A DNA stretch of 64,000 nucleotides, from NCBI GenBank assembly GCA_964035545.1, contig OZ037766.1, positions 6,748,722 to 6,812,721 of the forward strand. The letters are read 5' to 3'. Source of the DNA: Bugula neritina. Taxonomy: Eukaryota > Animalia > Bryozoa. The first letter of the stretch is position 1, and each line of letters begins with the position of its first letter. A program made the position numbers and the translations under genes. Below the pieces are notes generated by a model. That model was not told where the DNA came from. It saw nothing but the letters and a program-made list of their open reading frames with translations, and did not search any database. Shown here piece after piece: positions 19,084 through 25,736 of the stretch.

Positions 19084-22000
19084 TCAAAAAACTCTAGTCA
19101 GGACGGACTCTTGTATCTTCTGTATTAGAGAGAATGGATCGGAGTTGACATTTGAAAACTGAAAAATTAATATAAAAGTTGTCAACTAACGAGATAATAT
19201 TCATCAAGTGATACTATAAATTGAAGTACCATAGAATGCTGCTTGTTCCAGCCCATATTAACTGCCCAGCCCATATTAACTGCCCAGCCCATATTAACTG
19301 TCCAGCCCATATTAACTGCCCAGCCCATATTAACTAGAGGACACACTGTCATTGCAATCCACAATTCATCAAGAAATAAATGTATGCTCAAGTATTTCAC
19401 TGAATGTAACACTCTGATTATTCCTAACAATAGTAAGACTTGAGACTTCAAGTATTGAAAAGATTAGCTAGAAATGCTTACAGTGAATAGCTCCAAGGAG
19501 CTAATGTCAGACCTGGTATCAGATAGCCTGCCACGAGTGACAACACGAGTGAAGACAGGAAGAGCATTGAGTGGAGTGTAATACCGGTCCTGCAAAACAG
19601 TTAAAAACTTGGGCATAATTCACCCAAACTAGAAAATTATCATTTAGAAAGAAAAAGCATTTGAGTCCAAAGAATAACAAATTACAATAATGCATTTCGA
19701 TGAGAACTTAGGTATATCAATTAAAACTACACAAGGTACAATAGTTTATATCAAGCGATGTGAAAAGTTATACAAAATTACCCATGCTAAAAAGACCCAT
19801 AACCCCAGAACAAAACACCGAGCCTAGCGGTCATACAATTAAAAAATACATACTCCCGATACCCGAACAGGTGAGGTGAGGTGAGAATTAAATAATACAT
19901 ACTTGGACATACATGCAGAAGAGAGAAAATGAATGATATCGGAAGAGTGCACGAGATGAAAGTTGCAGGAAAGAGAAACCAGGGACGCCCAAAGCATAGA
20001 TGGCATGATACAATCAGAAAAGACCTCTTATCCTGTTCCCTCAATGAAGAGGAGGCTCAGGACAGGGTTAGGTGGAGAAGCCTAATTGAGCTAGGCCTCC
20101 GGCAGCCACCCGCTACCCGAACAGGACAAAGCAGAGATAGGTGAGCATTAAACAATACATACTTGAGTATATTTTACTATTAAAACAAACGTTTAAAATG
20201 ACTTTGTTTGAAAATTAAAATAAAATATGACAATTATAGATTTATAGTATTAGCAATTTCAACATTTGGAACATCAAATATTTATGCAATAGAATTTACT
20301 AACGGAGATTTGAATATTAAAACCTGGTCTATTGCTTAAAAATTTTGTAATTCACTATCAATTTTCATGAAACGATGTTCATATAATTTACTGGAAGTTA
20401 AACTTCTCGAATGTGAAGATACGGCACACCTATGTACATTACAATTTTCTCGTTTATTCAGTGCTTTATCTAATTGAATTTGTTTTTTTCATTAAAAACA
20501 GATATAGACTTCAATTTTGAATAATGAAGTCTGATAAAAGGTATAAATGAAGAAATGAGGATATCATAGCATTATTCACAGTAATAGCTTTCTATGAATA
20601 TGAAGTAAAGAGCAGACTTATAAATTTTTAGTAAACTTTTCATTAGAAATTTATTAGACTTTGCAGTGATTCTCTGCATTCAGTAGATCGAGTACCTCTA
20701 TACCTCCAAAATTTTAATATACTTGTAAATACAGCAATTCATAAAAGCAAGTCATTAGCTAGATTTTCTCATCACTGCATTATTAAGTTTGGCCAGCAAA
20801 TTTTACCGTATTAAGTTGTGTGCCTAAGCAATTTGTTCTCTTAATAAACTTTGTAGGCTCATTGCTTTGAGTAGTTTGAGAGTTTGGTCCACCCACTGAT
20901 GCACATTGCCACCAATAAATTATTCTCATACTTTCATCACAATTGGGATTTTGTTGTTATCTAACTAGATAACCTAAAAAACTAATCATTATGTAACAAT
21001 TTTGGCAAAAAACAATAAACCACCGTAATTGAAAATTATCAATACAAAAGCTATTATTTACTAATTTACTTTATACACTAACAATACTAACATAACTAAT
21101 CCGACATCTGCAATTCTTATGTAATGCTAGTAATTATATTTGAGTTATAGAGTGTGCTATTGTATGCATAACCCAAGATCCAATAAAATGCACTGGGAAG
21201 GGTGTCTGTAACTATCCTGCACAAAAATATATACATGACTCTGCAAGTTAGAGAATACTCACTGTTGAAGAACCATCTGCAAATGGAGTCAATGCCATGG
21301 AGAGGCAGAAAGAGTAGAGCTGCATGTCGTCTACATAGCCTAAAATACATGAAGTTACACAAATGGAAGGAGGGGGGGGGCACCTTTAGTCTGAAATTCA
21401 TTTAGTGCTGAATTATAACTATGTCAACTGATCAAAAGTTATTTCATACATTTTACTAAGAAGTTACCTTTCTACAAACTGCACTTGCAAACTTAGTAGT
21501 AGTAACAAATTCATTTCACTAATTTTATGAAATTTCCGGTTCATAATAACATATATAATGCATAAGAGCTAGGCAGCCGGACACTCATGTGAATAAGTGT
21601 GGATGTGGTACATGCTGCATTCACATTTCTTGCACCATTGAAACACTCACTTCTAAGTACGGCATAGAGTAACTGGAGGTAGTCTTTATTCATTTCTTTA
21701 GCCATAACCACTACTTCATTTTCTTTCTTGGGAGTCTACAAACATGACTTGAAGAATACAGTATAATAAAAATATTGTACTATGAGTAAGCATAAATTAT
21801 AATGAAACCTTATCATATTTGAGCATAAAATGAAAATTATTATATTTCAGTATAAAAAAGAGAAATTTGTGCAATAATTATAACTCTACTGTTTTGCAGT
21901 AAACTAACACCTCTTTCCACCATATACGCAGTAGTAATTAATAATAGTAACATCAGTTAGCAAGTTACTTACTAGCGTTGCTATGGCTACAGCAGACCCA

Positions 22001-25000
22001 TGCCTGACTGTTAGACCCAGCATGTCGTGAACAGATATAAAATCTGTAAAGAAATTTCTACCATGATCTTTGTGGTAGTCAAAAGCAGCTCTCCTCCAGT
22101 TTTCAAGATTACCTATAAGTTAAATTAGTAATAGTACTGTGGTAGATCATTATAAAAGATAGAATATGCTACCACAATACACAAGCATAATTAAAGGTGC
22201 AAAATGTGTGTGTTTGTGGTGTGTGTGTTTGTGGTGTGTGTGGGGGGGGATTCAAAATGGTAACCACTGAATTCCACTCACACCTGGACAACTACTTACC
22301 AGGGTAATGGTGAGGTGTGAGTATTGCTTGAAGATGGGGGTGATATTGACTCGCCCCACCAGGAGGTAGTAAATCCCATGTGATAACTGGATATCTATAC
22401 GATGGTTTATTTTTATACTGCTCTTTAAGCCTGAAACCAAAAACTGCCACTTGAAATATTAATAATATCTTAAGAGAGTTTTACTGAAGATAATAACTGC
22501 TATAATACATTGATAATAAAATTGATAACAAAACAAATATTTAGAGTTGGAATTAAAATACACTAGCCGTAAAGAGCTGAAGTACAAACCATCTCTGGCC
22601 AAGAGTAAACATATCTATGAACTGAGTCATGTCCCAGTTGAGAGCGTGATGAGTCTTCAACAGGATCAGTTGCTGCACCTCTTCATATCTAAAGGCGTTG
22701 GCAGCGGTTATACTCATCGCCGTCTCAAGACGACCCCCAGGGTCAGCAGCTGTAGCACTAATCAATAAGAAAGTGCAAACTGATTGCTCTAGCTAAGTAT
22801 ATTAAAATCTGACTTCTAATACTCATTTTCAGATTGGATGACATTTGGTTATTCAATAAAAATAGTTCAATACCAAAAAGCCCTTATTATTAGAGCACTA
22901 TTAAAATATTAACTAAGGCAAATTTGATTGAAATATGACTTAAAAAGAACAACACAAAAGTTAATAACAAATAATCTAATAAAGTTAAAAAAGCGACAAA
23001 TTTTATATCAGTGTTGGTTAAGGAAAGAGATATGGAAGTGAAAGTAAATAAGTACTAATTATTGGAAATGAGAATTAACGAACAGAGTGTTGGGAGTTAT
23101 CTCCAAGGACACACAATTCCTACAGGTTGTTAGACAGCTAGAGTATTTTACAACATTAAGGATAGCAAACAACGTGTTGAAAGCAGAGTGATAGTTACAA
23201 TTTTGAAGCTTTGCTAAGCACACAATTGAGCACAAAGACTAAAATAAAACCATAAGAAATAGAAATACAGAAAAGTGCTCAAATTACGCCGTCTATAGTA
23301 AAAAATGATATGATACCCAGATGAAGTACGGCTTTACTTACCCACAGTAATGGAGGTTTAGAAAGAGTACTGAGGTAATAAACACATAAAAAAGTCGATA
23401 AGATCGCATGCAATAAATACAAACGTTATGATGATTTAATTAGAATAATTTACTTTTACTTTAAAAATAATGTTTTGTATTTTATAGTTCACTCACCTTT
23501 GAGGTTTACAAAAGTCGCAAGAAGCACTCGTCTCTTTGTAAAGCTGCTCTACCCTGGAATTCAACAAGCATTAATACTTTTATTTTATGCCGCACAAATA
23601 GATAAGTTTACTACAGCCCATCAGAGGGAATGCAACAGAAGAATTTACGTGAGAATAGTGGAAAACTGAAACATATGCTATAATTATGGCAGTGGAGGTG
23701 TAGCATGCCAATACTTGATTTAGACTCTTACAGCACCAGTTTGCTAGGAGTGTGAAGTGAACCCATGCCCACTACACAACCAAGCCATATTAGTGGTTAG
23801 TTTCTTTCACATCCAAAAATTAATACAGTATATCTCTAGTATTCAATAGATATTAAGATGGCTGACGTTGCAAGATGGAATCCTAAAATTAATCAACATG
23901 AAAGTAATATTCTTTAAACGATGTTTCAAAAGAAAACAGCCAATTTTAATTTCAATTAATTATTATTTGGATTTGTGTTCTCTGTCCTGGTTTATCGTGT
24001 AATTGGACAGGCAAGAGTTGACCGTTGAAATAGTCTAATAAATATCTGTAGCTGCAGTTATAATAATTTACTAGTTTACTAAAACATACAGTGGAAAAAC
24101 TTATGAAAATAAAACTTCCAGTAACTAAAATTTGAAGTAACCAGTGCATACAGTTCCAGCTGGATTAATTTAATCTGATATAGTTAGATAAGGACTTCAC
24201 GTGTGAGATATTGATATTGGCTTTCCTAGAACAAAGATGGGTTAATGTGATAACGCTGGCAAGTATACCTGTCAAAGTCCGAAGATGTGGAGTCGGCAGT
24301 TGGTCGTTTGGCCCTGAGAGGATTGTATACCGTCTCTTCGCGTGTATACATGTTAAAGACCGACACCACCGTCTGCTGTAGAGCTTCTTTATAAAGAGCC
24401 ATGTTATTCCCCAGCCAGCCCAACATAGACTTCATAAAACCATTGTTATTTATAACAATCTCACCAGTTCTTGAGGAGATGACATACATCCTTGATATTC
24501 TATCAAATATCATTCTGCAGTCACTGAAATTAAAAAATTACAAAAAGATAGCAATATGGCTTTGCTTTGATAATATATCTAAAATCATTAACCAATATTC
24601 AATATGAAACTGAATACTTGAAAAAAAATATACAGTCAATTTGACAAATTTTCTGGTGCTAGTTCCTAAACACATATATTTAAAAAATTACTCATAAAAC
24701 AAGAATAAAAAAAACTGTAACGGTTAAAATTATTACATACAACTATGACTCATAAAATATTATAAACTGTCACCCAAAGGATTAGTCATATCAGTATACA
24801 TGTATATTGGTATAAGCATTTAGTACAGAGTCTTGTTTATGACTTCTCCATCACCTGAAAGCTGCCAGTTACCAAATAAACAGACAGAACAACCATTAAA
24901 ATACCTGTTCTTAGATTTCTTCAAGTTATTGAAAAGATCTGACAAATTTTGAATGCTCAACCCGTCTGTCTTACAAAGCTAGAAGAATAGACATAGAGAA

Positions 25001-25736
25001 GGTATTATAATGGAACAATGGTAATTTATGTAGCGAATAAATGAACAAAAATATACCACGCATAAAATGTTGTTAATAATAGCTTCATTCATGTCTTGTA
25101 GCCTAAAAAATGGGTGCCTGCAACTATTAAACATAATATTTAAACATGAAATTTAAGCCTTTAATTCTTGCACAAGTATATTTACTGTTATTTCTTATAC
25201 ATTGAGCATGTTTATATAGTAAAGCAAACCTTTTCAATACAAGTGAATACATGTGTGCATTAGGTGACATTAGTTGTTACAAAGTAGAACAAATATTCAA
25301 CATAAGCTGTAGCCTATATGACAGAGCAGTAGTATTTTAATAGGAGCATACACAAGAAATGTTGTTATACATTTTTAAATAATGCAATTATTTAAATTTA
25401 AGCCCTGTTGAAAAGTTACATTATTATGCTAAAATCACTCATTAAAGCTGATCGTACTTGCAATAAAATGGGAAGAGTCTACAGATAACTAACTAGTGTG
25501 TACAGTAACCCAATCTGTTTACAGACCCAAGAGTTGGTAGTTGAAGGGGGAACGACGAACTCCAGGAAGGAATAAGTTAAAGATCCATCATCAACATTCT
25601 GCAGATTAACTCCTTCCACTTTATTGTGTAAGTGATAGTAGTAGTAGAGTCCAGCAAAGATCAGCAGACAGGGCATTGCAGAGATGGTGAAGCGAAGCTT
25701 ACTGTTATATCCTGGTGTTAGTGTTGAGCAGTTCAT
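19084..25736 (-). CDS. Uncharacterised single-pass membrane protein of the GalT/HIT nucleotidyltransferase superfamily (~456 aa)
   Basis: 11 phase-consistent exons: 25736-25527, 24978-24905, 24514-24269, 23553-23497, 22757-22590, 22430-22300, 22112-21973, 21735-21651, 21339-21263, 19589-19482, 19158-19084 (1371 nt). Motifs: N-terminal hydrophobic FTISAMPCLLIFAGLYYYY, NPLRAKRP, CDFCKP, ANAFRY, WDLLPPGGASQYHPHLQ (GalT-type GAS..HPH.Q), RSDISSLELF. The first splice junction is the least certain. Confidence 0.85.
19248..19335. repeat. 18-bp intronic minisatellite (ccagcccatattaactgc) x ~5
   Basis: Directly visible; explains the repetitive ORFs at 19182 and 19243. Confidence 0.95.
19855..20145 (+). 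mobile_element. 5'-truncated RTE-clade non-LTR retrotransposon ends (two in tandem)
   Basis: RVHEMKVAGKRNQGRPKHRWHDTIRKDL...AQDRVRWRSL is the typical RTE C-terminal signature; (aggtg)n tails; ~18-bp target duplication attaaanaatacatact. Confidence 0.85.

Follow-up and report, generated by a model that had tools for sequence, protein, structure and literature searches.

Can an enzyme that works through a nucleotidyl-histidine intermediate be held in a membrane, with its catalytic domain in the lumen of the secretory pathway or outside the cell? This question is raised by a locus of the bryozoan Bugula neritina, on the minus strand at positions 25736-19084 of a stretch of 64,000 nucleotides from contig OZ037766.1 (assembly GCA_964035545.1, positions 6,748,722 to 6,812,721), the whole of which we call the window. 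To our knowledge, all characterised enzymes of the GalT branch of the HIT superfamily (GALT, ADP-glucose phosphorylase, the Ap4A phosphorylases and GDP-L-galactose phosphorylase) are soluble and cytosolic, and we know of no nucleotidyl-histidine enzyme in a lumen or in the extracellular space. We consider it probable that an intact protein-coding gene with 11 exons is present here and that its product, of about 459 residues, is a membrane-anchored enzyme of the GalT branch. The protein belongs to an unnamed, holozoan-wide family, an anchored variant within that branch in which an anchor, a stem and an extra N-terminal subdomain are added to a complete core.

The gene and the fold of its product

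Is there a gene at all? Splice sites and phases were enumerated, after which the exons were checked singly and the junctions verified by phase arithmetic and translation of the split codons. This yields an intact 11-exon gene that runs from an ATG at 25736 to a stop codon ending at 19084, with GT-AG introns, compatible phases and no internal stops, in a window whose G+C content is about 33% (AT-rich, eukaryotic; the assembly measures 216 Mb). An initial annotation of the window, made by a model from the letters and a list of open reading frames (ORFs), had proposed a multi-exon gene with CDFC, ANAFRY and GGASQYHPHLQ, and these motifs, together with NPLR, lie on the minus strand in separate open stretches: NPLR at 24324-24313, CDFC at 23519-23508, ANAFRY at 22702-22685 and HPHLQ at 22342-22328, the last within GGASQYHPHLQ at 22360-22328. 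The catalytic exon proposed there, 22430-22300, coincides exactly with our exon 6. The accompanying remark that the frame of this exon was missing from the ORF track fits only the track that the annotation itself had used; the correct frame is listed at 22292-22450. From the start codon to the stop, the features of the gene are as follows.

25527-25736, minus strand: exon 1, with the ATG at 25736, a short tail (K13, R15) at the N-terminus and then a hydrophobic segment covering about residues 16-34
25527, minus strand: preferred donor of exon 1, after this position; alternatives at 25523 (the donor of the initial annotation) and 25494
24905-24978, minus strand: exon 2, the stem, with a cysteine near-invariant in the family (LCK) and an I-x-x-L motif; alternative acceptor at 24965
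24269-24523, minus strand: exon 3, the N-terminal helical subdomain and NPLRAKRP; family-profile E-value 4.5e-28
23497-23553, minus strand: exon 4, CDFC, the two cysteines of a predicted zinc site, aligned to SCPFC of the ADP-glucose phosphorylase At5g18200
22590-22757, minus strand: exon 5, TA.D..GR, ANAFRY (N and F invariant) and K-T-H-H, whose histidine is the third predicted zinc ligand
22300-22430, minus strand: exon 6, catalytic, WDLLPPGGASQYHPHLQ; the predicted nucleophile is the second histidine, codon 22336-22334
21973-22112, minus strand: exon 7, where the second HIT-like lobe begins; profile E-value 2.9e-16
21651-21735, minus strand: exon 8, the TPKKENE strand of the second lobe
21263-21339, minus strand: exon 9, YVDDMQLY...S...P, conserved with a tandem paralogue; weak profile match
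19482-19589, minus strand: exon 10, R-V-V-T-R-G...RSDISSLELF
19084-19158, minus strand: exon 11, an NVN.DP motif, the C-terminal helix and the stop codon

Exons 2-11 match the profile of the family in strict order (profile positions 79-452), with single-exon E-values that reach 4.5e-28 at best and are marginal for the short exons 2 and 9. All columns that are invariant in the family (Q, R..RP, CD.C, T, N.F, D, ASQ.H.H) are present in the window protein.

To which superfamily does the product belong? The fold of the whole protein was taken from a proxy, the family member P0009, which is 48.7% identical to the window exons and collinear with exons 3-11. Its AlphaFold2 (AF2) model, based on a 17-sequence alignment, has a predicted local distance difference test score (pLDDT) of 84.9 and a predicted template-modelling score (pTM) of 0.83, and the structural results given here are those of this model. 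A Foldseek search against the PDB placed ADP-glucose phosphorylase (2h39/1z84) at the top, with an E-value of 2.7e-10 and a target template-modelling (TM) score of 0.72, followed by the GalT of E. coli and human, yeast Apa2 and a DUF4931 protein. Pairwise comparison with VIA-align gave Z-scores of 22.7 to 2h39, 22.1 to the E. coli GalT 1gup, 21.4 to the human GalT 5in3 and 15.2 to the DUF4931 protein 4qvu, as against 8-9 to Apa2 (7-9 across Apa2 4i5t and Rv2613c 3ano) and 6-8 to Hint and Fhit. The model is a single chain with two HIT-like alpha/beta lobes, a description that rests on Z-scores of 21-23 over 264-294 residues to 2h39, 1gup and 5in3.

The motifs point the same way. Single exons gave no phmmer matches among PDB sequences; the profile of the eukaryotic and prokaryotic family found 1z84 at an E-value of 0.0032, in an alignment that agrees residue for residue at RAKRP, the cysteine pair and G-A-S-x-x-H-x-H-x-Q. 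NPLRAKRP of exon 3 falls on SPARAKRP of 1z84, so that the R-x-K-R-P motif is present, and the catalytic exon aligns to AGASMSHSHSQ of At5g18200 and GSSQDHKHLQ of Apa2. In the GalT of E. coli, an inserted hairpin lies between the NPL and RAKRP elements. The window protein has CDFC, the histidine of K-T-H-H and the first histidine of HPH at the positions of the GalT zinc site; in the 17-row eukaryotic alignment both cysteines and the first HPH histidine are invariant and the K-T-H-H histidine is near-invariant. Because the fold match (Z 22) and the equivalence of the motifs coincide, a GalT-branch HIT fold is supported by model and alignment alike. The initial annotation had read the motifs in this way and had named GalT and Ap4A phosphorylase as the structures to compare; the HIT-like fold was indeed found for the proxy, with Z-scores of 21-22 to GalT and 8-9 to Apa2.

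An anchored eukaryotic family and its soluble relatives

How widespread is such a protein? A phmmer search with exon 3 alone, which maps to about residues 90-175 of full-length family proteins, returned 55 matches among 1.84 billion representatives, including full-length proteins of about 415-555 residues. The named members found by this search and by two word-index searches comprise unicellular organisms (a choanoflagellate, two ichthyosporeans and Pigoraptor), a calcareous sponge, a coral and a sea anemone, protostomes (molluscs, an annelid, a brachiopod, rotifers, a priapulid, a locust, a termite and a springtail) and deuterostomes (many echinoderms, two hemichordates and Branchiostoma). 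No vertebrate or tunicate was among the matches, those of a starfish query included, which is suggestive for a search that was not exhaustive; the apparent absence from vertebrates would explain how the family has escaped study. All named members are labelled 'uncharacterized' or 'hypothetical'. Pfam and NCBIfam gave chance-level matches alone, both for six exon translations and for full-length eukaryotic and prokaryotic members, and full-text literature searches found no paper on the family or on six accession names belonging to it. The window protein shares 45-49% identity with all members (48.7% with P0009, at 456 residues the closest full-length relative) and therefore has no annotated close relative.

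An unrooted maximum-likelihood tree built from 30 rows, 17 of them eukaryotic and 13 prokaryotic, sets the eukaryotes on one side of a branch with support of 100/99. Their branching order roughly tracks species phylogeny, with the unicellular holozoans basal, the protostomes together, and the sponge, cnidarians and deuterostomes together. Owing to this split and this species-like order, the sequences fit a single origin of the eukaryotic family followed by vertical descent, and the 'patchy' eukaryotic occurrence suggested in the initial annotation gives way to a distribution that is holozoan-wide and looks vertical. Since the tree is unrooted, the prokaryotic donor cannot be named. Among the eukaryotic members, the Haliotis rubra model P0023 (565 residues) carries an internal duplication of about 110 residues of the catalytic region, probably an artefact of annotation or assembly, and was excluded from the alignments behind the profile and the fold.

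One of the matches, the JGI protein P0091 (363 residues, no anchor), led to a large soluble family of at least 702 clusters. The GTDB species that have it number at least 376, the majority of them Dehalococcoidia, Anaerolineae and other Chloroflexota. Prokaryotic homologues reach phmmer E-values down to 1e-51, and hhalign, applied to the eukaryotic and Chloroflexota alignments, gave a probability of 100% and an E-value of 1e-67 over 360 columns that include the N-terminal helical subdomain. By shape, a half-archaeal ESM-Atlas cluster fits the P0009 model over residues 76-453 with TM scores of 0.74/0.90. At the level of sequence, these comparisons establish that the eukaryotic family shares its ancestry with soluble prokaryotic enzymes. 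A likeness to uncharacterised prokaryotic proteins, put forward in the initial annotation, was borne out in this way, by alignment for the Chloroflexota and by shape for the half-archaeal cluster.

What these relatives do may be reflected in their neighbourhoods, which we counted at 80 sampled Chloroflexota loci. In about 40 of the 80, purH lies directly upstream, the order in Dehalococcoidia being purF-purM-purH-X (X is the homologue), then a nicotinamidase/phosphoribosyltransferase fusion. The glycogen synthase GlgA is directly upstream in 14 loci, with gaps of -28 to 105 nt and frequent overlap of the two genes, mostly in Anaerolineae or unclassified Chloroflexota (L045-L087), and a GT2 glycosyltransferase is downstream in 16. 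The prokaryotic homologue P0246, with an intact CDFC, heads an apparent trehalose operon, X-OtsB-NTP-transferase-PGM-OtsA (L094:6001-12128), where the NTP-transferase is a sugar-1-phosphate nucleotidyltransferase and PGM a phosphoglucomutase; there are also two purB-purA-guaB-X operons and one histidine operon. The common denominator of these neighbourhoods would be purine (adenine) nucleotides together with glucose bound to a nucleoside diphosphate (NDP), which is compatible with a reaction like that of ADP-glucose phosphorylase. No GlgC above the curated cut-off was found in five Chloroflexota genomes with the gene (G001-G005), in two of which GlgA is directly upstream of the gene and in two about 2 kb away. 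It is a possibility that the soluble homologue supplies ADP-glucose there; because the five are metagenome-assembled genomes, the missing GlgC is a lead and not a proof.

Topology and chemistry

Where would the catalytic domain lie? Among the family models of at least 400 residues, 48 of 50 have one N-terminal 19-residue window with a Kyte-Doolittle (KD) hydropathy of 1.55-2.98 and no second hydrophobic segment, flanked by a net charge of mostly +3 to +5 on the N-terminal side and mostly neutral or acidic on the C-terminal side. Since the N-terminal flank is positive, the positive-inside rule predicts a type II signal anchor with the catalytic domain facing the lumen of the endoplasmic reticulum or Golgi or the cell exterior, an orientation that we regard as fairly likely. 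The stem contributes two cysteines that the anchored eukaryotic branch conserves and the soluble prokaryotic one lacks, and such a pair would fit a lumenal disulfide. The single N-terminal anchor noted in the initial annotation is thus a property of the family, with the charge expected for the predicted type II topology, and is found in the tandem paralogue likewise. Should that topology be right, nucleotidyl-histidine chemistry would be operating in a lumen or on the outside of the cell. From the unicellular holozoans up to amphioxus, the full catalytic and zinc-site signature stands behind a predicted signal-anchor, in a family that neither Pfam nor NCBIfam recognises.

What reaction would be catalysed? 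By analogy with GalT, the likely course is a ping-pong nucleotidyl transfer through a histidine-bound nucleoside monophosphate (His-NMP). The second histidine of H-P-H-L-Q (codon 22336-22334) would attack the alpha-phosphate of an NDP-X, most plausibly an ADP- or UDP-hexose, a covalent NMP-His intermediate would form with release of X-phosphate, and phosphate or a sugar-1-phosphate would then resolve the intermediate, making the enzyme a phosphorylase or a transferase. The CDFC pair, the K-T-H-H histidine and the first HPH histidine would form a structural zinc site as in GalT. In the architecture read from the sequence and the proxy fold, a short N-terminal tail and one hydrophobic segment, the predicted anchor, precede a stem and helical subdomain with two conserved cysteines, and these the two-lobed catalytic domain. 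We name NDP-hexoses as the substrate class only tentatively.

Taken together, these proposals would make the family the first case of a GalT/HIT-type nucleotidyl-histidine enzyme in the secretory pathway or at the cell surface, phosphorolysing or interconverting NDP-sugars or dinucleotides in the lumen of the endoplasmic reticulum or Golgi or in the extracellular space. Its source would be a soluble prokaryotic enzyme of purine or NDP-glucose metabolism, inherited a single time at the base of Holozoa, which most invertebrate phyla would have retained and vertebrates lost. We offer this wider picture as a speculative one, with rather more room for doubt than for belief. If true, it would add an unrecognised step to nucleotide-sugar homeostasis or to extracellular nucleotide signalling.

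Several observations weigh against an anchored GalT-branch enzyme encoded by this locus. The whole-protein fold rests on the model of a proxy that is 49% identical. In the window copy, the hydrophobic segment at about residues 16-34 has a KD of 1.43 and an N-flank of +2, compared with a KD of about 1.9-3.0 in the family and a usual threshold, for the 19-residue window, of 1.6. CxxC is lacking in all 80 sampled Chloroflexota loci; CDFC or CDLC is present in other prokaryotic members, which lie nearer to the eukaryotes. The neighbourhoods of the prokaryotic genes are of several kinds (purine, NAD salvage, histidine, glycogen, trehalose), and therefore do not fix the substrate. The fifth position of the HPHxH motif is a histidine in most members, as in the hydrolytic Hint and Fhit, and a glutamine in the window protein. 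Finally, a search of sequencing runs found no RNA run with the locus, and the support for the gene is comparative; the sole run found holds 96% of the locus words and is DNA, since the introns are included among them, probably from the source sample.

The alternative that fares best against this evidence keeps the fold and changes the topology: the segment may be a cleaved signal peptide, giving a secreted soluble enzyme, or it may anchor the protein with its catalytic domain in the cytosol or at the surface of an organelle. The weak hydrophobicity of the window copy's segment would suit such a reading, and GalT-type substrates (sugar-1-phosphates, ADP-glucose, dinucleoside polyphosphates) are classically cytosolic. 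Across the family, however, the segment spans at least 19 residues with a KD above 2, too long and too hydrophobic for the core of a typical signal peptide, the N-positive charge bias is consistent, and the stem cysteine pair is limited to the anchored eukaryotic branch, as expected of a lumenal disulfide. We judge another topology to be unlikely, if still a serious contender.

A second alternative concerns the chemistry. The protein could be a nucleotide hydrolase or phosphoramidase like Hint and Fhit, or a nucleotide binder that is not catalytic, as the HPHxH of most members may suggest and as the eukaryote-only profile, which matches Hint-type proteins first (6iq1, E-value 0.012), would also allow. 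On the other hand, glutamine occupies the fifth position, as in GalT, not only in the window protein but in about a quarter of the aligned eukaryotic members and in 72 of the 80 loci from Chloroflexota. Moreover, the single chain of two lobes, RxKRP and the zinc site resemble GalT and ADP-glucose phosphorylase (Z 22) much more than Hint or Fhit (Z 6-8). A hydrolase or a mere binder is in our view improbable, and nucleotidyl transfer by an anchored GalT-branch enzyme is the account that we carry forward.

The tandem copy, canonical GALT and other known systems

The gene has a tandem paralogue on the same strand at about G000:C2:6737587-6745883 (L003 and L004), some 22 kb downstream of it and about 2.8-11.1 kb before the start of the window. 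The two are 46-60% identical per exon, and the paralogue bears an N-terminal anchor of its own, in which a hydrophobic run comes after MKTRH. Over a tract of 464 bp on the minus strand (21641-22104; exon 7, intron 7 and exon 8), they share 86.6% DNA identity, intron included; outside it there is almost no DNA similarity between them. The tract is probably the trace of gene conversion, judging from this pattern of identity.

Which splice sites join exons 1 and 2? Three donors of exon 1 leave the frame open, at 25523, 25527 and 25494. Donor 25523 with acceptor 24965 gives a product of 456 residues and drops the cysteine that is near-invariant in the family, whereas donor 25527 with acceptor 24978, which has a strong polypyrimidine tract, gives 459 residues and retains it. 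A comparison is provided by L096, a 2.8-kb contig of a close relative that is 86% identical: donor 25527 is kept there and improved to CAG/GT, and acceptor 24978 is kept as well. Because of these conserved sites and the retained cysteine we prefer the 459-residue product on sequence grounds, with 456 residues also possible; the latter length, given in the initial annotation, could be reproduced from its own splice sites and yields to the longer form for the same reasons. Donor 25494, which would give 470 residues, was rejected, as its GT is lost in L096. The contig is one of three (L096-L098, Logan contigs from runs SRR4020082-84) that are 86% identical to the window across exons 1-4 and their introns and that come from a closely related organism.

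The same comparison bears on whether one member of the tandem pair is a duplicate that is decaying or not expressed. That two copies exist, that no RNA run contains the locus and that the window copy has a weaker anchor than the paralogue could all be read in this way. Against it stand the 11 of 11 exons that are open, the intact splice sites and the retention of every invariant residue, and exons are better conserved than introns: over the first four exons, identity to L096 is 92.6%, versus 87.6% for non-exon DNA (Fisher p 4e-4), and the only exonic indel is an in-frame 12-nt one (exon 2, an insertion in the relative), versus 108 gap positions in non-exon DNA, so that no indel breaks the frame. 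A decaying or unexpressed duplicate strikes us as very improbable, and we continue to treat the window copy as an intact gene.

Some features of the introns may be recorded here. Intron 10 contains an 18-bp minisatellite (19248-19335, 4.9 copies, 97% matches), which gives rise, on either strand, to repeated pseudo-ORFs ('PAHINC', 'VNMGWA'). Intron 9 contains a plus-strand open frame of 71 residues (19929-20144) without a Pfam match, whose GRPK.RW.D....DL motif may resemble the C-terminal tail of the ORF2 protein of non-LTR (long terminal repeat) retrotransposons.

There is practically no chance that the gene is an ordinary Leloir-pathway GALT with a mis-modelled N-terminus: the automatic name 'Galactose-1-phosphate uridylyltransferase' on some relatives is set against the lack of any PF01087 or PF02744 match in the exons and in ten full-length relatives, an identity of 10-18% to GalT structures and a canonical multi-exon GALT elsewhere in the genome, at G000:C2:16319384-16321945, all of which agrees with the initial annotation that this is not GALT. 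That locus, split into exons, is one of two canonical GalT (PF01087) loci found (L089-L091); the other, G000:C300:76791-77332 on a small contig, lies within a 283-residue open frame and may be a copy with few introns or may stem from a bacterial contaminant or symbiont.

How, then, does the family compare with enzymes that are already known? Closest among them is the plant ADP-glucose phosphorylase At5g18200 (2h39, 1z84, 1zwj), which is the best match both by structure (Z 22.7 over 275 residues, root-mean-square deviation 3.6) and by sequence profile (E-value 0.0032) and which shares with the family R-A-K-R-P, CxxC, G-A-S-x-x-H-x-H-x-Q and the two-lobed single chain. It differs in being soluble, in having neither anchor, nor stem, nor the helical N-terminal subdomain of about 90 residues, and in an identity of only 15-18%; the alignment begins at residue 146 of the proxy model, and the likeness is one of fold and motifs. 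GalT itself (E. coli 1hxp/1gup, human 5in3/6gqd) shares the fold (Z 21-22), the HPH-x-Q motif and the Cys2His2 positions of the zinc site, but is 10-12% identical to the family, lacks a common Pfam match and is cytosolic. The Ap4A phosphorylases, such as Apa2 (4i5t) and the mycobacterial Rv2613c (3ano), have a motif of the G-S-S-Q-x-H-x-H-L-Q type that aligns to the catalytic exon, with a much weaker structural match (Z 7-9, Foldseek TM score 0.3). The uncharacterised prokaryotic GalT-like HIT proteins of DUF4921 and DUF4931 stand in between, with a Z-score of 15.2 to 4qvu and Atlas clusters at a TM score of 0.55; they are without the N-terminal subdomain, and neither eukaryotic nor prokaryotic members of the family match PF16268 or PF16285, the similarity being structural alone. 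The soluble prokaryotic family (about 363 residues; e.g., P0156 and P0246), by comparison, is homologous over the catalytic domain and the N-terminal subdomain together, in some members with CDFC, and differs from the eukaryotic one in having no membrane anchor or stem. Abundant in Chloroflexota, these soluble cousins offer an easy biochemical entry to the substrate.

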